64,000 nt of DNA from Fimbriosthenelais zetlandica (lineage: Eukaryota), in assembly GCA_977030845.1 (NCBI GenBank), contig OZ365113.1:17856001-17920000 (forward strand). The letters are read 5' to 3'. This document shows, piece by piece, positions 44,320 through 60,100 of this stretch. The notes under the pieces are model-generated. The model saw only the letters and a list, made by a program, of their open reading frames with translations, did no database searches and was not told the DNA's origin. Positions within the stretch are counted from its first letter, which is position 1, and every line of letters begins with the position of its first letter. A program made the translations under genes and the position numbers.

Positions 44320-47300
44320 TCAGTTTTCTGTTGTTCCCTTTGCAGTAAGATTGGTGGCAGGTAGACCGACAGTTCCCACTTTACTGGTGTTACTTGAGGC
44401 AGTACCTTGTACATACCTGAGGAGTCTCTCGTCGTAGAAATAGACTGCATATACTTTAGGAACAAAGAATGAAACCATAGTGATTGCAGCATTCAACAAA
44501 AGGGAACTAACCAGAAGAATCACTCGATAGATGGCATTCTTCACAGTAAGATATGTGGGAATGAATATTAACCACGTAAACACTGTGGTTGATACGGCCA
44601 CAAAGATGTAATAAGATTCGTTGAAGTTCCCTGGCAGGTGGCGAGTAAGGAAGCCGAGGATGGCGCATGACAGAATGATGACCAGGTTGAAGATGAGAGA
44701 GGGGACAAAGCCCATCATAGGAACGTCACAGAAAAGTTCCACCACTTTCTCTATCTGCACAGGCATAGCTACTCTTGCATGGGTTGGGAAAGCCAGTGAC
44801 GAAATCATTGTAACAACCAACTGAAATGACACCAAAAAACACCGTACATCAAGGAGCAGAAGGAAAGAGAGCTAAACAAAAAGTTTAGTAACAAGAAAAA
44901 GTGGAAATTGCTTGAACCAAGAAGATACAAGAAGTAGTTTTTTAACACCTCTCTTGCAAATGTGTCATCTTTAAGAATATTATATTCTTAAAGTTTTATC
45001 TTTATCTTTGAGTTTCATCTTCAAGAATATTATAGGCCTACTCTTAAAGGTGAGACAGAAGTATTAGTATTCCACTAAGACGAAATTGATCTTCTTCATC
45101 TAAAGGTCGCCAAAAGAATGTACCTACCTGTATGAATATTAGAACAGCCGTTAAGGTGTTAACAGACCTGTTGCTTGTTAGAGAAGGCATTGCTACACCT
45201 TTCTTGGAGCCAGTGAAGATCCTATACACACGGGCAGTCTTTGTCAGAAGAGGCACGAAAATCATGGCAACCGAAATATGAAAACCCACAGTTGAGATCA
45301 GACAACTAATTTCTTGAGGCTGGGTCAACATTAGTATGCCTGTAACTAGAGCTAGGGCGATACCAATTAGGATGACAGAACATAGCTGAATGGATGAGGC
45401 TTTAATCAGTTTGATTTCTCTCTTATAAATGATCCAAATGAAGAAGAGGATGGCAGGTATTAGGAGTAGGAATGTAATACCATAGAGGATGAGTGATGCC
45501 ACATCGTTCCATCTGAGAAAGTCGGGCGGTATCACAACACAATCGGACCCTAAAACATGGAAACAAATAATTATTACACATGCATGCATAAAATAGGCCT
45601 ATCAAATGTTATTCATAAACTGAAGGCACAGATATCAGTATTCAAACGATTAACACAATAATGATTAAATTGAGGCATAGAACTAATATTTGCATCATTG
45701 TGATCCTAATTATATCTTTTCAGACTTACCTTCATCGTCATCTGGCCATGTCAGCTCCGGGCATACCTCACACCACTCACTGGTTCCATTGACCACCAGC
45801 TTTTCATTACCTCTGCATGATCGGCATTCCCAACAGCAAGGTAATTCTTCCCTTACAGCAAATTCTCTCGGACCACAAGCTTCACTACAGATAGACTCTA
45901 ACCTTTCCTCCTGCTCACCAACTCCTGTGAACAACCCCCACTCCATAGCTTCATCAAACACGGTGAACACCTCTAAATCCTTATCCAGCTCAGCGACTAC
46001 TTTATGTTGGGGTTTTCGATCAGAATTGTACTGTCTGATTTGCAGTTTTCCCAAACGATCTCCATTCTTATCAAAACTTACGTCAGCACTGTACCCTTTA
46101 AACTTAGTATTGCGAAGATAGGACAGAAGCAAGGGGCCATTGATACACTTAGCAAGTTCTGCTTTGTCAGAGAAAGCAGAAGGGCAATTCTTTCTTATCA
46201 GGGCATCGAGGGCATACGAGAATGCATATACTCCATCAATGTAGAGAGAGACTGAATTGATCACAAATTGATTTCTTGTTTTGAACCTATTACTTATAGG
46301 AGTGTCAACATAGTCTAAGCATGATGTTTTCCCAATGGGAACCCTATCCCAAGAACAGTCAAAAAACACCTGCCAGATGTATTTCATAAAAGGATTATAA
46401 GGCTGCTGTCGTAGAGTTAGACTGAAATAATGCTCATCAAATTCGGGCACTGAATGTGCCTGAGAGTTGCAAATGAATGATCCATCTGCCTCTTTCCCTA
46501 AATCAGCACCTACAAGGGAAGAACCTAAAACCCAAATAAAATTCTTTTCAATGCCCCTAGCCACGAGCTGTTGCTGAATCGAAAGAAGCTGTGAATATTG
46601 AATGAATGCGATGATGATGCGTGCCTTTAAATGTCTGCTTAACTTGTATACAACCTCCTCAGCTTCATCTGCCTTCAAGTCAGGGGAGAGCATATCAGTC
46701 ACCGACAGACAAATATTGTAGCTTTTCCCTGTTTCCTGCACCATTTTTGCTGCATTTTCTCCGTATGCACCTTCCGAGTACAGAAGTGAAACGTAGGTCC
46801 AGTTATAGTGGGCTACAAAATTCAGCATTGTTTCCACCTGTTTGATACCGGGTATGGATTGAAAAATAGAGTTGTAATGTGAATCCCAACAATAAAAGTC
46901 AACTCAATTTCACAATTTCGTTTCTTATGGAAAGTTAAATGCTAACTTCCTTTATAGGCCTACATCCTATTTATATTCTGTCCGACCATATTACATAATA
47001 GAGGTTAAAAGTGATTGTAAAAATGATTACCGTGAATTTATCTGGTGGAACCATACGTGAGAAGTAGCTATATTTCGACTTATCACTGAGGTCATCGTTC
47101 GTGGCGAGGGTAGCCAACATGGGCATGTGGAGAAGGGATGCCAGCCCAGCTACCATAGCTGATTCACCACTGCCTCCAGGTCCAACAATACCAAAAACAT
47201 CCAGATCTATACAACCCCGAGAGCAAGTGAAAAAATTAGGAGAAGATCCCTCCATGAAGCTTTGGTTATAACTTGTAAGTAGATGATTTTGGGGATTCGA

Positions 47301-47696
47301 CTCATTCATCTCCTTAAAGGTCACGTGGCATTCTTCGTTCGAAATGTTTAAAAGTTTAAGAGTCTGTCCCAGGGCTGCCAGAGCCCTCCAGCAGCTATCC
47401 ATGACGATATAACCAAGGCTGATATTGGGTAGAAGGCCTGATTTGTTGTTGATTTCATCAATAGCATACACGAAAGCCTGTTGGAACTGAAATGACACCG
47501 GAAGCCAAGGATTTGGCGTAAGATAGCACAAATCCTCCTCATTTACCGGGTCTCTAGGCAGGTTCGAGAATCCACTCAGCAAGCCGAGGTTAATATCGCC
47601 TGCGACACCATAACAGTCAGCATTTAAATTTGGTATCTGACACGAGGCTCTTCGCATAAAGGAAATCAGGAGTAATAAACAAATTTTGATATCCAT
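44320..47696 (-). CDS. Class C GPCR, metabotropic glutamate receptor-like (Venus flytrap, cysteine-rich domain, 7TM), 898 aa
   Basis: Exons 47696-47031, 46837-45730, 45549-45128, 44820-44320 with GT-AG introns in phases 0,1,0. Signal peptide MDIKICLLLLISF. Flytrap motifs GDINLG, LLPNISLGYIVMDSC, LSDKSKYSYFSRMVPPD, SEGAYGE, VSFDKNGDR. Cys-rich CSEAC...CCWECRSC...CEVC...WPD. 7TM motifs KASS, KTARVYRIF, PGNFNES, FVPKVY. Confidence 0.95.
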
Positions 47697-49300: not shown

Positions 49301-52300
49301 ATGGCACTTTTGTTAAAGTTACCACCAGTTATCTTTACATTTTTTATGATAATATGCGCCGTTGCACAGGAGAAATCAACTGACGAAATTGTAGCTCAGG
49401 CCTGGTTGGAAGAATATAATATAGAAGCTGAGAGAGCTTATTATGAGTCCACAGAGGCGGCCTGGGACTACAACACAAACATCACGGACTTCAACCAAGA
49501 GAAATCGGTAGGTGTTACATACATATATACATGATGTACAGGAGGAATGGTGCGGAATGGGAAATTATATTCCTACAAAGAAGTACTTCTATATTCGAAG
49601 GTGTGGTAATATTTGTTATTGAGTTCATCATCGTATTTGAACTGATCCAATTTTATTATGATTACGTCAATTTCATATTTTCAAGTAATATTATTATTAA
49701 CTTCAAAACGATGAGCTATAAATACTTTTCGGAAGGGGGATTTTGTCATAATAAGACTTGACAATTGGTCAAATGCTTAATGTGGTGTATCCTTTTTGAG
49801 ACCTACATCTCGTGACAATGCCTAATTATTAGGTCTGATATACAGCCTCAGGCCTGCTCCTATGTATTTGGGTCACACATTCTGGGGAAAAAATCACTCC
49901 TTCCAATGGTTCTAAAGTGTATTTAATATTTAAATAATCATCTCGATCTGATTAACAAGTAGTATTCTGTAAAATAATCCAAAGGTTTAACAAAATAACT
50001 TCCATATTATGTGATGTAATCGGCCCTTGAAATGGAAGTTCCAATTGAGTATACAATTGGCATTATCTCTATCGTTATGCAATCTGCTTGGGAGAAAATC
50101 AAAGGGCATGGTTTGAAGTTGAGTTAATAAAGGACATTAGGTATATTCTGGGTTATTGTTTCTCTATACTTCATGTTAATCTAGCTGAGGATATTTGGGT
50201 GGCATTGGTTGACAGTTGTATCAATTAGGATCATGCGACCTCCTAACAATCGTATAGCCGTTATCAAGGAATGTGATAAAACAACGCAATTAATCATTAA
50301 ATGTATAACGGATCACTGATAACAGTTTCACAATATGTATTTTCCCACAGCTGGATCAGCTCCCCATCTTTTATAAATTTAACAAAATATATACATGGCT
50401 TTTCATATGAAAATAAATCGCCAGTTTATTTTAGACAATATTGCGGCCATATGTTTTTCGACATATCAAACTGCCATATGGTTTTCCTGCTGAACTGGCC
50501 ATGCCGATAACCAGACTTTCAAAGTTTGGGTTCAAAACAGACAGGATTTAGGTTTATGAGTGATTCACCCCAGCCCGCATACCGAGCTGGGTCAATTACT
50601 ATAGCAGCTCTCTGCAGGTCATGTAGCGGACGAGCTGCTCAGGGGCACAAGGTAAAGGCCAAGGAAATGAGGTTATGGTTCGGGTACAGGAGAATTTTTA
50701 TTTTTTAATCTCAGAGAAGTCTGTGGCGTATGGCAATTTGACCCGAAAATGAACTACATGTCCTTTAAACGCTGTGCCCCATCTTACTAAACAGGAGGAA
50801 AGCCATATAGTGGACCCTTCAAGCGTGAAATTGAAGCTTAAGTTTACATATTGTCCTTCGGGGATTTCCTCCGGACAACACAGGTAACACATTTCCATAA
50901 TGTATTTTTACTGCGTATGTTTGCAAGGAAGGAATCTTTTACATTTTCAGGATAATGCCAATGTAGTGCGTGCTAAATTTGATTTAGCAGCTGCACAAAA
51001 TGCATCTTCTTTTGACTGGCGCAGCTTTGAAGATGAATTGACAAAACGTGAGCTGCAAAAAATTGCAATAGCTAATACAGCTATGCTCCCTGATGACAAA
51101 GTAAGAAGGGTAAGTGAGCTTTTCATCAAACTACTTGCTTACACCGGAAGTAGTTTGAACATTTTGGAGAATGAATAGACCGATAAGGGTCATTGATGCA
51201 GAATTTATTTCTATTAAATACTGTCATTCAACCCATTTTATTTACATCTTAAGGTGAGTGAACTTCGCAGCAACTTAAAGAAGATCTACAGCACAGGCAA
51301 GGTGTGTAACAAGCCCGGAGACACATCAGGCAAATGTTATCCCTTAGACCCGGGTAAGTCTGTTCAGTTACTAGTTACTAGTTGGGAGCATTGCTAAACA
51401 GGTTCCAGATCTATCATTTCGCATTGGAATATAAATTCCCATAATTTAACAGAAGGTATTTTATATATATGGTAAAATGAATCAAGCTGTTAAATAACCC
51501 AGATCTGACCCGTATTATGGCCACATCGCGCGACTATGACACTTTGGAATGGGCATGGAAGGGCTGGCGTGATGCCACAGGCAAACACATGAGAGAACAG
51601 TACGAGGAATACGTGGACCTTCAGAATGAGGCAGCCCTACTAGAAGGTGAGGCCTGCATCCATCCCCACAGCTGATGGATCTTGGGACAATGGGTCTTTA
51701 TTAGAATTTCTTCAGAGAAGAGTTTTCATGGAATATATGCCTATCGGAACATGGGACAGCTACTGGTTTATCAAGCCCTAAATATCCACAGTAAAATAAC
51801 TAATTATCTTTAACAATAAAACAAAAACATTTTAAACTATTTAAAAAACGGGAGGGGGTACCTCCTGTTACCTACTATGGAAGGGCTACTATATGCTAGT
51901 ACTAAAATATATAGTTCAAACTGAGGAAATTTTCATCATTGGACTTTGCTGCTTGGTATACATGTATACATACTGTACCACCTTTTTTATAGTGAGATTT
52001 AAATTGTGTACCAAATAATGTGTACCAAATTTTCAAAAGGTTTTACTGACCAGGGGGACTACTGGAGGTCGTGGTATGAGACAGAGGGATTTGAGAAGAT
52101 AGTGGCTGATCTCTGGGAGGAAGTGAAACCACTCTACGAGCAACTTCATGCTTACGTTCGCCGAAAGTTAATGGAACAATACCCCGAAGAGAAGTTCCCA
52201 GAGACACGACAAATGCCAGCACACCTTCTTGGTAATAATCTGACCTATCTTTACATCTCACCTTTAGATTCCTGGAATGAGCCATATATACGTTCACCTT

Positions 52301-55300
52301 ATTTTTGTAACATCTGTTCAATTCGTTGTACATGTAGGCCTACGTTGTAATTTCTAGGCAATATGTGGGCGCAGTCCTGGGATGGACTTGAACCTCTTGT
52401 TCGACCGTACATGAATAAAACAGCTATAGATGTTACCAAAGCTATGGTTGATCAGGTCAGAATAATTATTCACCTTTCATCTATCAATTTTAGTGCTTAA
52501 ATTGAAAACCCGCTCCCTCAAATGATAATGAAAATGTTGTCTGGGTTCTAACTATCATAAGTATTTCCTACTAGGGATATGATGCCACGAAAATGTTTGA
52601 ACTTTCTGAGGATTTCTTCACTTCTCTTGGTCTGGAGCCTATGCCCGAATTGTTCTGGAACAAATCTATGATTGTGAAGCCAGAAGACAGAGAAGTGGTT
52701 TGTCATGCGTCTGCATGGGATTTCTACAACAAGAAGGACTTCAGGTCAGATATAAATTGTTATAATATTATTGTGAGCCAAACCAACTCCTATAACCTCA
52801 CTTCAGCAAGAAAATTGTCAATCCAATGTCAGGCATTATACTCATTGCAACTTGGATTGGGTGGTGGAGGTGACCATTGCCCACTGACAATATTCTTAAT
52901 CTGCATTTACTAACCCTCCACATTTGGCCCAAGGATAAAGAGAAAAGTGTTTATCCCCAAATAGTGTAACTTTGTATAACATGGCAATGACTTGTATGTT
53001 GTCAACAGGATCAAACAATGCACTGATATAACGTCCGAGTATCTATTGACAACCCACCATGAAATGGGCCATGTTCAGTACTTCCTACAATACAAGGATC
53101 TTCCTGTCGAGTTCAGGGATGGAGCAAATCCAGGTACATTCCCATTATCTTAAAAACAATATGTATATTACTTAAGGTCCCTTTTCTTTGTATCAATACC
53201 AATAGGATCAAACAGTGCACAGATATTACAATGGAGTACCTGGTGACAACCCACCATGAAATGGGCCATATTCAGTACTACCTACAATACAAACCGCTAC
53301 CTGTCAAGTTCAGACGAGGAGCCAACCCAGGTAAAAGGGGGTAGTGTGTAGTACACAAAAGCCTTCTTTGACACTTAATCAAATGTGAAAAATATGATAA
53401 TCCTGATGCCAAAAATAGTTAAGGAGAATGCCTCTTATTCCCATGAAATCTCTGCATGCTAGTTTGACTATGTGACAGCTCATTCACTGACGCTTCTCTC
53501 ATCTTTCCCGCACAGGTTTTCATGAGGCTGTCGGCGATGTCATGTCTTTATCTGTTTCTACACCAGAACATCTCCATAAAGTTGGTCTCCTCGAGACAGT
53601 AGAAGATGATGAAGGTATTTTAAGATGCTTAGTTCGGCACTTCTCTCTTCTATACCCAATTGAATGTACAGTGACATTGGGGAAAATGGAGACAATATGT
53701 AGGATAATATGGAAATATGTAGGTTTCTAATAACTAATTTAACCGTATTGTTTCAGAGGCTGATATCAACTTTCTGATGTCACAAGCACTGTCGAAGATA
53801 GCTTTCCTTCCATTTGGCTACCTCATCGACCAATGGCGCTGGTCTGTGTTCAGAGATGAGACCAAATCCACTCATTACAATGAGGGCTGGTGGAAACTAA
53901 GGTATAACACAAAAACCAACTGATAACATGTCAGTTTTAATACTATGAAATTGGTTAAAATAACGTAAAACGACTACTGAGTAGCTGTCCATATGTTATA
54001 TGCTAGTCTCTGTTTTGCTATCTCCTTATCATGAGACTGCTTGTAATATTGGGTTTCAGATTTTAGACCTGTTTGACATTTTATTTTAAGGTGTAATATT
54101 CAGGGAATGTCACCCCCTGTAACAAGATCAGAGTCGGACTTTGATCCTGGGGCGAAATACCATATTCCAGGCAACACACCGTACATCAGGTATGTGAGAG
54201 GGGTATATAGGTCTACAGGGGGATGTAACTGGAATGGGATGTAGTTGATTGGATCATGCAAATGTCTCTCCCAGCAGTAAAATGAAATTATTTCTCAGTA
54301 ATAAAACATCGATCCTATCTTCAATTGAATACCGAGTATCACAACAATAATATATGCCACTAATTTGTATGTGACGTGAGGAGGGATTAGGGACTGGATA
54401 CCACAGGATATTCCACCAAAATATGCTTTAATATAAAGTTATGACAATATTTCCATTTCCCTTATAATATGCGTAGTTCATGGCCCCTTTGATCGTACAG
54501 TAACCTCATTTCCCTTGCTACGCCCCCTTTATAAATACTGCACGTGTGTGAAGATAAGCTATAGGCCCTAGCCCAGGTATCGCATTTATACCAGGGTAGG
54601 CCCGACATGGCTAACAAGGAACATGATTAAATTGGTGTTAAATAAAAGCTTATCACTAAAATTTTACATTAAGTGACTTACCGCCATCTTTATAAAGATG
54701 CTGCCGACATGTTCATCCAGTATTCGGGAGATTATAACGTAATCACTTGGTACAATCCATTAGTAATTTTGTGACGAATTCCTTGCACGCTTGAGGTTCA
54801 ACTTCTCACGGTCAAAAGAATGACCGGCCAATAAGCTATATTGTAGAGAAAGACACAACACTTCCGTTTAGATCTAAAAACAGACCAGGTCAATTGGTTC
54901 TGGCAGCAAAATAAGCTTTTCAATCTGTTATGGTACTATATATAGCTAACAAGCTAGGTAAAATTTGTACTGAATTATCTATGCACAAATCTACAAATTT
55001 CTTTGATTTTGTTTTACATTTCTTTCCCATTTATTCTTTGTATTGTCCTGATGTATTGTATCAATAATGTTATTGATAATAAAATGTATGGTATTATTTC
55101 AGGTATTTTGTGTCCTACATACTTCAGTTCCAGATGCACGAAGCATTGTGTGAGATTGCCGACGGAAATGCCTCCCTTCATCGCTGTGATATATATCAAT
55201 CAAAGGAAGCTGGAGAGAAATTGGGGTAAAATTAATGTTATTATGCCAGGCATCAGTCATTCTCCCTCCCCGATCTCTGCCCTTTAATTGGTTTCTATTA

Positions 55301-55635
55301 TGATTTACCTTAGATTTACATGTATTTGAATGTCCATGCTTGTATTTTGTAGGAACATGTTGAAGCTAGGGTCTTCCAAGATATGGCCGGACGCCCTGGA
55401 GGAAGTGACAGGAACCAGAACAATGTCCGCCACATCACTGCTGAAATATTTCGAAAAGTTACATGATTGGCTGAAAAAAGAGAACGAAGGACATGATGTC
55501 ACTTGGGAGGAGAACTGCCCTGAGGGCAGTATTATAAGCCCTACCAGTTCTGCTACATTGACAAGTCCCTTGTCTTTTACAGTATTAGTTTTCTGCTTTC
55601 TATTTACTCTATTGAAAGGTGCCCGAGGCATCTAA
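49301..55635 (+). CDS. ACE: Angiotensin-converting enzyme-like peptidyl-dipeptidase (peptidase M2), single catalytic domain, 647 aa
   Basis: Exons 49301-49507, 50951-51109, 51254-51353, 51503-51646, 52040-52231, 52358-52455, 52575-52744, [53009-53133 or 53206-53330], 53516-53614, 53757-53901, 54091-54189, 55103-55225, 55353-55635; 1944 nt in frame. Signal peptide plus ACE motifs [74 protein letters not shown]. Confidence 0.97.
53009..53133 (+). CDS. ACE: ACE active-site exon, copy A ([41 protein letters not shown])
   Basis: Acceptor GTCAACAG|G, donor CAG|GTACAT, 125 nt, phase 2 to phase 1, intact HEMGH. Confidence 0.9.
53206..53330 (+). CDS. ACE: ACE active-site exon, copy B ([41 protein letters not shown])
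   Basis: Acceptor after pyrimidine tract TCCCTTTTCTTTG...CAATAG|G, donor CAG|GTAAAA, 125 nt, phase 2 to phase 1, intact HEMGH. Confidence 0.9.
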
Positions 55636-57122: not shown

Positions 57123-60100
57123 CTATAGAGGGTAGTTCGTGATGTATGAAGAAGGTTCGGCACTAGAGGAGCGAAGAACTTCCGGTACGTAATTTAACTG
57201 AAATGAAAATGAATAAAATCATCATTGTATTCATTTAGAATACCTGATATTAAGATTCAAGTTATGATATTGGTTGTAATATAATTTTTATAATGCAATT
57301 TTCTATTACCGAGTCCGAAGTTATTGGTGATTCACCAGTTTGCTGAAATATACAAGGGAAATAACTGCATACATGCTTCCGGTAGGAATGAGTTAAAAAA
57401 ATAACTATAGAAAAATCTTCAGAAATGTATAATAAAGGAATGATATATTACAACACATTATAAACTTACAAAGCCATGGAGCTCTACGTCCTCGGTCTGT
57501 GAGGATTAGAAACGAAACATTCATAAAAGAACAACTGTAATCAAACAACTACTATAATTATTGTGTGGGGAGAAATTGGGTGTCCCAGGAGCATTCGAGT
57601 GTAATACGGCCTAAGAAGGAGATGGGAACGGTTGTGACAGTTGTTAAATTTCCTTAATGAGCTTACTCAACCCACATTTAACCACTCATAACAGTTAATA
57701 GTTACCAAGTGATATGATATTTTATTGATGTGAAGGGCTTAGCCATTTATCTAATGACCAAGCATGATATCCACGATAAGGTTGTCCTGATTCTACATAT
57801 TAAAGATACATATAGAATATCTTGTAAACACGACCACTTACAAAGACAATTTTCATCCGCTGAATTTGGTGACGAATCCACTTGTAGACAGCATTTCCAG
57901 TCAGATAAACAAGAGCCAAAATCAATATGGCCAAAGCGAATGCTGACGTAGGTGGTAAGTCATCTAGAAGGCAAAATTGATAGGTTATTTTATTATTTGT
58001 ACTTTCTAATGGTAATCTGGAAATATTGGAATTACTTTTTTCATAAAACCTGAGCTCACCTGATCTTATGGCAGTAAAGATGATCATCCACACCTGTAGT
58101 AGAATGCCTCCAGCCAGAACAAAGTTCACTGCGCGAGCATGCACCTCTCCACCAAGCCGCACCTTCTTAGATACAAAGAAAATATTGTGGCGGTCCACAA
58201 CATGTTTCATGACAAGATATACCAAGCCTGAAAAAGTGAAACAGAATATATTTTAAAAAAATGGATTTATTTACACATGTATACTACGTATAGCATTTTG
58301 TCGGAAATATAGGTCTACGCCACTATTGCATTCAACCAAAATAATGACTTACCAAACGGTACTATGATTGGACATATGATGCTGTAGGACATCACCATTC
58401 CAAAAACAACTCCCACCCATGCATACTGTTGTCCGTATGGAAAAGGTGAGCCTTCAGTCTGAAAAGAAAGACAAATTCTAGGATTCTTAGATCAAATGAT
58501 TGCAGTATGAGATTGAAATAAATACACTATGATGAAGACAGACAACAGACCTTCCTGATGAGCTGTCTTTCAGCTGGAGAACTGGCAAAGAGAAGTTTAA
58601 TGGTGAAGACGAGAAGATCTCCAACTCTCAAAAGCTGTAGACCTGTCCCCATGAAGGCTGACGTTATGACATAATTTACAAAAAAGGCTCCATTATCCGG
58701 TAGGAAGACACAACTAGACAATAAAAAATAATTCCTCTATAGACAGATGTTCTATGTGTGCTGAAGGTTCATGATCACTTTGAAAAGCAGACAACCAAAT
58801 TAAAAAAATAATTATGCGAAAGGAAGTGTAATATTATGCTTACTTCCATCTGAAGTCTTTCACCGTGCCCTTTTGTTCTGAGAGCCACATCAACATTGCC
58901 TTTGCACTGAAAATACAAAGTATATATCCGTTGATCGAATCGAAAGAGAGATTAAAGAAGACAAAGTCCTAAGACAATAGAATCTAATACAGCCATGCTA
59001 AAGCCTTTAATATAATGTTTCTAGAAGAAAAAAATCTAAATCCTGTTGCAACAGGTCTTGACTTTCTTGATACAATGATGATGTAATAACATACCTGGTT
59101 AGACCTAGAGAGGGCAGGACGAGGGCCATGAGGAGGAGTAGGGCATAAGTCTTCTGCATGATGAGCTTCTCCTCAATGGTCCTCCGCCAATGTCCGATGA
59201 GCAGTTCGGAGAAGTAGACTAGGAGGGGCAGTAGACAGGAGAAAACACTGAGCAGGAGGACAGGGATGACATTCACGATGAGTGGACTCTGTAACCAGAC
59301 CAGACAGACATTAATCATTCTCCATCCAAAAGGTGATTATTTTTGTTGTTAAAATCTTTAATGATTCTGCTATAATATTATACCTTCAAGCCGGAGAGAG
59401 CATCTTTGTAGCGCCACTCATCGAGGAGATTCATAAAGACAGCAGGCGTGGTAAAGATGAAGAGGAAGAAGAGGAGGCCTACGTTGAGTAAAGCAGCTTT
59501 GATCCACCACCAAATATCGATAGCTGATAAATTATGCCTGCCGAAAATAAAAATAAAAACTGTCACTACCGATGCCTGCCAACCCCTGGCTCTTTACCTT
59601 TAAAATGAATAAGGCTCAATTGAAACAAATAATATATTTCATGGAAGATTATTGTGAAAGACTTACCAGTAGATATCATCACAGGGAGGAGAATAGTAGA
59701 CAATCCAGTTAGAATCATCTAATTTAGATTGAGGGCAGCATCTGGCTCGACATACGCATCGCATTCTCCACACTTTATTAAAGTAGTTATATACCCTATC
59801 AAATATATCAAAGGCACTTTATCAATATATTATATGGGAAATACGGAATGTGGAATTCATACTATAATTATAGCACCGGATATTACTAGATAATACAGAG
59901 TTATAGTACCTGATTGCCATGTTTTCGGTATAGAATGAAAGGAATACGATGTCTAACGGGGCCTTCAGGGCCTTCTTCACATACTTCTGATAGCGTTCTG
60001 TATGTTCTTCTTCCAGTTTGTTACATTTTACTATTGTGTCCATCTGTAAGGGACAGTACAAGAACTTTAGGTTACATATTCTTCCTACTAGAAATGTGGA

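Follow-up and report, generated by a model that had tools for sequence, protein, structure and literature searches.

Two putative mutually exclusive zinc-site exons with different S2 residues in a single-domain ACE gene of Fimbriosthenelais zetlandica

The angiotensin-converting enzyme (ACE, peptidase M2) gene studied in this work resides on a stretch of 64,000 nucleotides (nt) from the annelid Fimbriosthenelais zetlandica (GCA_977030845.1, contig OZ365113.1, positions 17,856,001 to 17,920,000), which is called the window throughout and to which coordinates refer unless a locus is named. The gene encodes a single-domain enzyme, and the eighth of its 13 exon positions, the one specifying the HHEMGH motif of the zinc site, is occupied by two homologous copies in tandem, exons 8A and 8B. 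At two positions corresponding to S2 residues of human ACE, 8A specifies Phe and Asp and 8B specifies Tyr and Arg. We consider it probable that 8A and 8B are mutually exclusive exons providing one and the same protease with different S2 pockets, that the pair goes back to a tandem duplication kept by selection and that the same two states have been reached repeatedly by convergence. The arguments come from the exon anatomy, the logic of the reading frame, purifying selection on both copies, the residue correspondence with human ACE and the recurrence of such exon arrays in other taxa.

As we envisage it, each mature messenger RNA (mRNA) would carry either exon 8A or exon 8B, inclusion of both or of neither leading to a frame shift and an early stop. 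The two proteins would be identical outside exon 8 and differ in the helix and loop bearing the zinc ligands. The S2 pocket of the A form is predicted to be hydrophobic and acidic (Phe and Asp, with a further Asp and a Glu nearby), that of the B form hydrogen-bonding and basic (Tyr, Arg, Lys). If human ACE is a guide, P2 groups that are acidic or accept hydrogen bonds may be favoured in substrates and inhibitors by the Tyr/Arg form, and hydrophobic or basic ones by the Phe/Asp form. Such a difference in substrate specificity is plausible and is strengthened by the recurrence of the pattern. The exon pair would stem from a tandem exon duplication in the lophotrochozoan or the annelid lineage and would have been retained by selection, and evolution would have arrived at the two-state solution several times, in gene paralogues and two-domain ACEs as well as in other arrays of alternative exons.

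Anatomy and reading frame of the duplicated exon 8

The gene model was derived from tblastn of ACE proteins against the window, combined with a splice-site model with GT-AG introns and an open frame; the start of exon 11 was placed at 54091 by sequence. With either copy of exon 8 the product comprises 647 amino acids and is hydrophobic at both ends, with a signal-like stretch at the N-terminus and a tail at the C-terminus. Identity to ACE proteins in tblastn is about 50-60% along the gene, and six exon translations exceed the threshold of Pfam PF01401, covering profile positions 178-581. The gene and its central features are the following:

49301..55635, + strand: whole ACE (peptidase M2) gene, from tblastn, splice-site model and Pfam PF01401
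52575..52744, + strand: constitutive exon 7; its 3' end AG forms the first two bases of an Arg codon that is completed by either exon 8 copy
53009..53133, + strand: exon 8A, 125 nt; HHEMGH; Phe at the Tyr369/Phe391 position and Asp at the Arg381/Glu403 position; acidic tail (D,E,D)
53134..53205, + strand: intron between 8A and 8B, 72 nt, the shortest of the gene
53206..53330, + strand: exon 8B, 125 nt; HHEMGH; Tyr and Arg at the two S2 positions; basic tail (P,K,R)
53516..53614, + strand: constitutive exon 9; its 5' GT completes a Gly codon; encodes GFHEA with the third zinc ligand Glu

The HEXXH motif and the downstream Glu typical of peptidase M2 are thus present whichever copy is used, as HHEMGH in both copies of exon 8 and GFHEA in exon 9, and both copies match PF01401 profile positions 332-372 above threshold. 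Both are bordered by AG/G acceptors and G/GT donors, each opening with the last base of the Arg codon. They share 80% identity at the DNA level, whereas the flanking introns do not align. The encoded peptides differ at 7 of 41 residues (S/M, L/V, V/I, F/Y, D/P, E/K and D/R, 8A given before 8B), one of these differences lying in the sequence FRDGANP of 8A and FRRGANP of 8B. None of the other exons of the gene is duplicated, nor was a second HEMGH-type exon found elsewhere in the window. The remaining introns measure 119-1443 nt, compared with the 72 nt between the two copies. A preliminary description of this DNA had reported the duplicated exons, and our re-translation is identical to the one given there. 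The acidic-to-basic swing it noted between the copies is likewise real. The interval it assigned to the exons, 53054-53330, begins inside exon A and is replaced by the full exons as listed above.

When exon 8A alone or exon 8B alone is included, the reading frame runs open from exon 7 into exon 9. Since each copy is 125 nt long, inclusion of both leads to a stop 13 codons into B, and skipping of both leads to a stop almost immediately. Comparison of 8A with 8B yielded a synonymous divergence (dS) of 0.78 and a nonsynonymous divergence (dN) of 0.13. The resulting ratio, dN/dS = 0.17, implies that both copies have long been under purifying selection and that neither is decaying. The closest match in the protein collection at the level of the exon, queried with the exon B reading frame, is 84% identical. 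Equal length and phase, tandem homology and canonical splice sites, the hallmarks of a mutually exclusive exon pair, are all found for 8A and 8B.

In some related genes the intron between the copies is even shorter than in the window. It measures 36 nt in Capitella teleta, 34 nt at the locus designated L001 and about 43 nt in P0004, the latter judged from a read-through open reading frame (ORF). Introns of this size are too short for removal, and the two copies therefore cannot be joined to each other in these cases. The 72-nt intron of the window gene may also be too short for splicing of A to B.

Two inverted repeats were noticed around the exon pair. A repeat of 14 nt, 86% complementary, connects 52934-52947 in the intron before 8A with 53181-53194 in the pyrimidine tract just before 8B; pairing of the two would loop out exon 8A, and the repeat may be due to chance. 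In the second, the exon 8A acceptor (52998-53009) pairs with sequence inside each exon 8 copy. A role of these elements as RNA docking and selector sites was considered and set aside, as those listed are short and could be chance.

The S2 positions in human ACE and in exon arrays of other animals

Exon copies were mapped onto solved structures of human somatic ACE (7q3y and others) by ungapped phmmer alignments, which also reproduced the N- and C-domain sequences quoted in the preliminary description. Exon position 25 corresponds to Tyr369 in the N domain and to Phe967, that is Phe391 in testis-ACE numbering, in the C domain. Exon position 37 corresponds to Arg381 in the N domain and to Glu979 (Glu403) in the C domain. 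Copy A with Phe/Asp and copy B with Tyr/Arg therefore stand in the alignment exactly as had been proposed, and among the homologues recovered Asp instead of Glu is also found at the Glu403 position in the C domains of fish and birds. Tyr369 and Arg381 belong to the S2 subsite and both bind the P2 carboxylate of the inhibitor RXP407, their counterparts in the C domain being Phe391 and Glu403 (PMC2975193, PMC7148434, PMC11880972); the earlier statement that these residues are S2 determinants for RXP407 agrees with this literature. For a second inhibitor, 33RE, eight residues have been reported as determinants of N-selectivity (PMC7148434). Five of the eight fall within exon 8, and three of these five change between A and B, namely 357/379 (Leu versus Val), 369/391 and 381/403. 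The other two, Glu at 354/376 and Thr at 358/380, are common to both copies. As a whole, exon B scores higher against the N domain (59.7 bits) than against the C domain (52.0 bits).

A profile built from both copies was searched against 1.84 billion representative proteins. Among its hits were several short ORFs running through two copies in tandem, and these led to genomic loci and annotated isoforms. Exon 8 arrays of two to four copies occur in annelids, scallops, oysters, a periwinkle and sea urchins, and in most of them one copy is Tyr/Arg and another Phe/Asp or Phe/Gly. Examples, each copy given by its residues at the two S2 positions, are:

Capitella teleta (annelid; GCA_000328365.1, KB295454.1): two copies of 125 nt, Tyr/Arg then Phe/Asp, separated by an intron of 36 nt
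L008 (a relative, about 78% protein identity): four copies, Y/R, F/K, Y/R and F/G
L006: two copies, F/D then Y/R
Pecten maximus: four copies, Y/K, D/G, F/D and Y/R, with F/D and Y/R adjacent
Lytechinus variegatus: four copies, Y/N, F/D, Y/R and Y/R

The annotated ACE protein of Capitella contains the Phe/Asp copy only. On the other hand, RefSeq lists ACE isoforms of equal length that differ in nothing but exon 8 for Pecten maximus, Mizuhopecten yessoensis, Ostrea edulis, Magallana gigas (Crassostrea) and Littorina saxatilis; in Lytechinus and Strongylocentrotus the difference between isoforms spans a region starting at exon 8. In oysters both exon forms are used at the RNA level. Full-length spliced mRNA contigs from public RNA runs contain one form or the other, the Tyr/Arg exon in P0242 and further contigs and the Phe/Gly exon in P0236 and further contigs, and in one partly processed contig the Phe/Gly exon has already been spliced to exon 9. 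We found no description of alternative or duplicated ACE exons in the literature, and a paper on oyster ACE makes no mention of isoforms. Clusters of exon 8 variants in amphioxus were considered as further alternative copies and dismissed, as the variants belong to separate genes and not to isoforms. The two-domain ACE of Lottia carries Tyr/Arg in domain 1 and Phe/Asp in domain 2. Taken together, the anatomy, the selection on both copies and the homologous arrays with their RNA evidence give good support to the reading of 8A and 8B as mutually exclusive exons, the splicing itself being predicted for F. zetlandica.

Some arrays have further peculiarities. In Pecten maximus the copies at L003:16805-16929 and L003:17319-17443 are more divergent than the others; one has HEIGH in place of HEMGH together with Tyr/Lys and the other has Asp/Gly. 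Asp likewise occupies the Phe/Tyr position in sequences from Lineus and crinoids, in one Strongylocentrotus isoform and in domain 2 of a two-domain ACE from Lingula. On Lytechinus variegatus CM031017.1 one ACE protein is encoded twice, at L004 and L005, about 600 kb apart and in opposite orientation with an identical four-copy array at each, which points either to a recent segmental duplication or to an assembly duplicate.

The two S2 positions do not vary independently. Among 264 distinct ACE exon peptides, Tyr at the first position is combined with Arg or Lys in 55 and with Asp or Glu in 38 cases, whereas Phe is combined with Arg or Lys in 2 and with Asp or Glu in 71 (Fisher test on Tyr/Phe against basic/acidic, p = 3e-16; like all counts and tests given here, uncorrected for shared ancestry). 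Other partners are G, S, N, Q, T, H and A for Tyr, and G, T, A, I and N for Phe. The sites are coupled in that Arg almost requires Tyr, which makes structural sense because both residues bind the same P2 group. Phe with Arg or Lys was noted as a rare exception in P0234 (Dimorphilus), in P0213, in P0333 (Branchiostoma lanceolatum) and in the second copy of L008. Six of ten two-copy arrays consist of a Y/(R,K) copy and an F/non-basic copy, as against about 16% expected from the peptide frequencies (p ~0.002), and all three four-copy arrays likewise contain such a combination. The recurrence of this pairing in arrays of annelids, molluscs and sea urchins as well as in the two-domain ACEs of vertebrates and Lottia suggests that it has been selected and is not accidental.

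Alternative explanations and the origin of the exon pair

Several observations weigh against the interpretation proposed here. For F. zetlandica we infer the use of 8A and 8B in transcripts from sequence, and the 72-nt intron may well be spliceable, so that steric exclusion is not established. Arrays that do not follow the pattern exist, namely Y/D with Y/T in Biomphalaria, F/D with Y/S at L001 and F/G with Y/G in a second Lytechinus gene. The coupling of the two sites means that the double match to human ACE counts for less than two independent matches and comes closer to one coincidence. While the states of the two S2 residues are C-like in A and N-like in B, as the preliminary description had it, exon A as a whole is not closer to the C than to the N domain (54.5 vs 53.6 bits). 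Besides the S2 pair, only 357/379 switches between the copies among the residues reported to confer selectivity (Ser260, Glu262, Asp354, Ser357, Thr358 and Glu431 in the N domain; Thr282, Ser284, Glu376, Val379, Val380 and Asp453 in the C domain), so these residues do not switch jointly. The constant part of the protein is N-like at 260 (Ser) and 262 (Asp), and its Ser at 431 matches neither domain. In human ACE, mutagenesis has established that S2 residues act jointly with distal residues and do not set selectivity alone, and the contacts of Arg381 are often weak (PMC7148434, PMC11880972). As the shared residues outside the exon are either N-like or match neither domain, neither isoform is a full copy of a human domain. 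Our functional prediction accordingly concerns the direction of a preference and does not present the isoforms as N and C domains in miniature.

It is conceivable that one of the copies never enters an mRNA, being a dead duplicate or one in decay. Degenerate copies do occur, an example being the first copy at L002 with its atypical donor and unusual residues. In the window, the open frame, the AG/GT borders, the complete set of zinc-site residues and the exact length and phase of both copies all speak against this, as do their Pfam scores and the dN/dS of 0.17 at a dS of 0.78, and we regard it as very improbable. A more serious contender is that the copies are alternative but functionally equivalent, serving tissue-specific or quantitative regulation, for example through unproductive splicing of A to B, with residue differences that represent tolerated drift. 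Indeed, both sites vary widely in ACE homologues (Tyr with D, E, G, S, N, Q or R; Phe with D, E, G or T), an mRNA including A and B would be a target of nonsense-mediated decay, and the effects of S2 changes alone can be modest or inhibitor-dependent in work on the human enzyme (PMC7148434, PMC11880972). Drift would not lead one to expect the over-representation of the Y/R plus F/non-basic combination in arrays, nor the persistence of the copy types across genera in scallops and oysters. Moreover, most differences concern positions that are known or suspected to belong to the pocket, while strong purifying selection acts on the remainder of the exon. Functional equivalence thus appears unlikely to us, and two exons differing in their S2 pockets remain the preferred explanation.

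With regard to origin, convergence and the retention of an ancient dimorphism had both been put forward in the preliminary description. In the latter case both exon types would derive from one early-bilaterian duplication, and the vertebrate C and N domains would be their direct counterparts. This would account for the presence of both states in annelids, molluscs, echinoderms, vertebrates and the two-domain ACE of Lottia as well as for the 5' exon border and phase that all arrays have in common, and orthology of the copy types is clear inside each of three groups, the scallops, the oysters and the vertebrates. To compare distances, the two diagnostic sites were excluded and same-type and cross-type distances summed for each pair of taxa. 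Same-type copies were clearly closer only within scallops (7 vs 13) and within vertebrates (frog and fish, 3 vs 13), whereas for nearly every distant pair the two sums were the same or almost the same (27 and 27 for window and Pecten, 20 and 21 for window and Lytechinus, 19 and 19 for window and frog). A maximum likelihood tree of 55 exon peptides, poorly resolved with its 41 columns, groups the copies by lineage. It contains a supported bivalve clade, within which the oyster sequences pair by type, Phe/Gly with Phe/Gly and Tyr/Arg with Tyr/Arg, and the Phe/Asp copies of scallops likewise constitute a group with support. The two copies from Littorina fall together, and those of the window are placed among annelid-like sequences. 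Neither distances nor tree indicate descent from the vertebrate N and C lineages, and the comparison at exon level with chordate domains, suggested earlier as a check, revealed no orthology of exon A to the C domain or of exon B to the N domain.

The order of the copies is variable as well. F/D precedes Y/R in the window, Pecten, Lytechinus and L006, and Y/R comes first in Capitella, in oysters and in copies 3 and 4 of L008. A conserved order with Phe/Asp first, as seemed to emerge from Pecten, Lytechinus, L001 and L006, was therefore abandoned in view of the reversal in Capitella, oysters and L008. In sea urchins, the repeat unit consists of exon 8 fused to exon 9, has other borders than the arrays of exon 8 only and is not simply derivable from these. 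A single ancient pair would in addition call for complete gene conversion sparing two sites only. In the copy pairs of Capitella, Pecten, Lytechinus and L008, saturation of synonymous sites goes with a low dN, so that recent gene conversion does not explain the similarity of copies within a species. Since same-type copies are no closer to each other, the tree follows lineage, the order varies, the sea-urchin unit differs and synonymous sites are saturated, several old lineage-specific duplications that would have converged on two states are favoured over one bilaterian dimorphism, which we hold to be quite improbable.

On a wider scale, bilaterians may have repeatedly evolved two ACE active sites, Tyr/Arg and Phe/acidic-or-small, a generalization that we advance tentatively and place somewhat short of an even chance. 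Three genetic routes would have been taken, via alternative zinc-site exons in annelids, molluscs and echinoderms, via tandem domain duplication in vertebrates and Lottia, and via separate gene copies in amphioxus.

A number of observations concern other parts of ACE genes. In the genomic ORFs P0309, P0321 and P0324, which contain an annelid-like TTHHEMGH, exon 8 reads straight into exon 9 (GANPGFHEA...), so that some lophotrochozoans, like sea urchins, lack the intron downstream of exon 8. Two copies of the equivalent of window exon 10 are present at L008:12873-13019 and L008:15274-15420 (76% and 67% identical to exon 10), compared with one in the window; they might represent either another pair of alternative exons or the beginning of a gene copy in tandem. 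Equal-length ACE isoforms with differences confined to residues 122-145 occur in Lineus longissimus (P0191/P0268) and with differences confined to residues 509-547 in Owenia fusiformis (P0190/P0306), and other ACE exons therefore also appear to be alternative in some lineages. As to the surroundings of the window gene, the long ORFs upstream (44320-47696, - strand) resemble, as judged by eye, a class C receptor of the metabotropic glutamate type with a ligand-binding domain and a seven-helix region, and those downstream (57800-59566, - strand) may be pieces of a multi-pass membrane protein.

Significance and comparison with known systems

Domain selectivity of ACE is an active problem in drug design, N-selective compounds being sought for fibrosis and C-selective ones for hypertension without angioedema. 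The share of S2 and of distal residues in this selectivity is still debated, and natural isoform pairs that differ by only about seven residues near the zinc site and are found in several phyla offer a clean comparative test. If the repeated evolution of two sites holds true, such exon swaps would single out the S2 determinants while the remainder of the protein stays constant, and the functional split between the vertebrate N and C domains would reflect a general requirement, far older than vertebrate ACE, for the processing of two peptide classes. Invertebrate ACEs have usually been treated as one enzyme per gene; our findings suggest that they come in at least two catalytic flavours. This bears on the interpretation of earlier biochemistry on cloned leech and oyster ACE, in which only one isoform was studied. 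The exon swap would be a case of alternative splicing that rewires the specificity pocket of a protease and of a convergent two-residue solution attained by different genetic routes.

In classical pairs of mutually exclusive exons, such as exons 2 and 3 of alpha-tropomyosin, exclusion is enforced by an intron that is too short or by frame incompatibility. Exons 8A and 8B resemble these pairs in being tandem, homologous and of the same length and phase, in a length that is not a multiple of three and in the very short intron between them. They differ from them in that the switched segment bears the zinc ligands of a protease together with its specificity pocket and in that the mechanism of exclusion is putative. 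A close parallel is the gene of Capitella teleta, likewise a single-domain ACE of an annelid with a Tyr/Arg and a Phe/Asp copy of 125 nt, though with reversed order and an intron of 36 nt. The RefSeq isoforms of scallops, oysters, Littorina and sea urchins share with the window gene the equal length and a variability restricted to exon 8 or to the region from exon 8 onwards; differences concern the number of copies (2-4) and their order, the size of the introns (34 nt to 2.2 kb) and, for sea urchins only, the exon borders. With the N and C domains of vertebrate somatic ACE, finally, the window gene has in common the same two states at the same two positions and, as predicted here, two catalytic sites with different S2 chemistry. 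In vertebrates, however, duplication of the whole domain has placed both sites in one polypeptide, whereas in the window gene a single site would be swapped by the choice of exon, with everything outside these 41 residues being identical.

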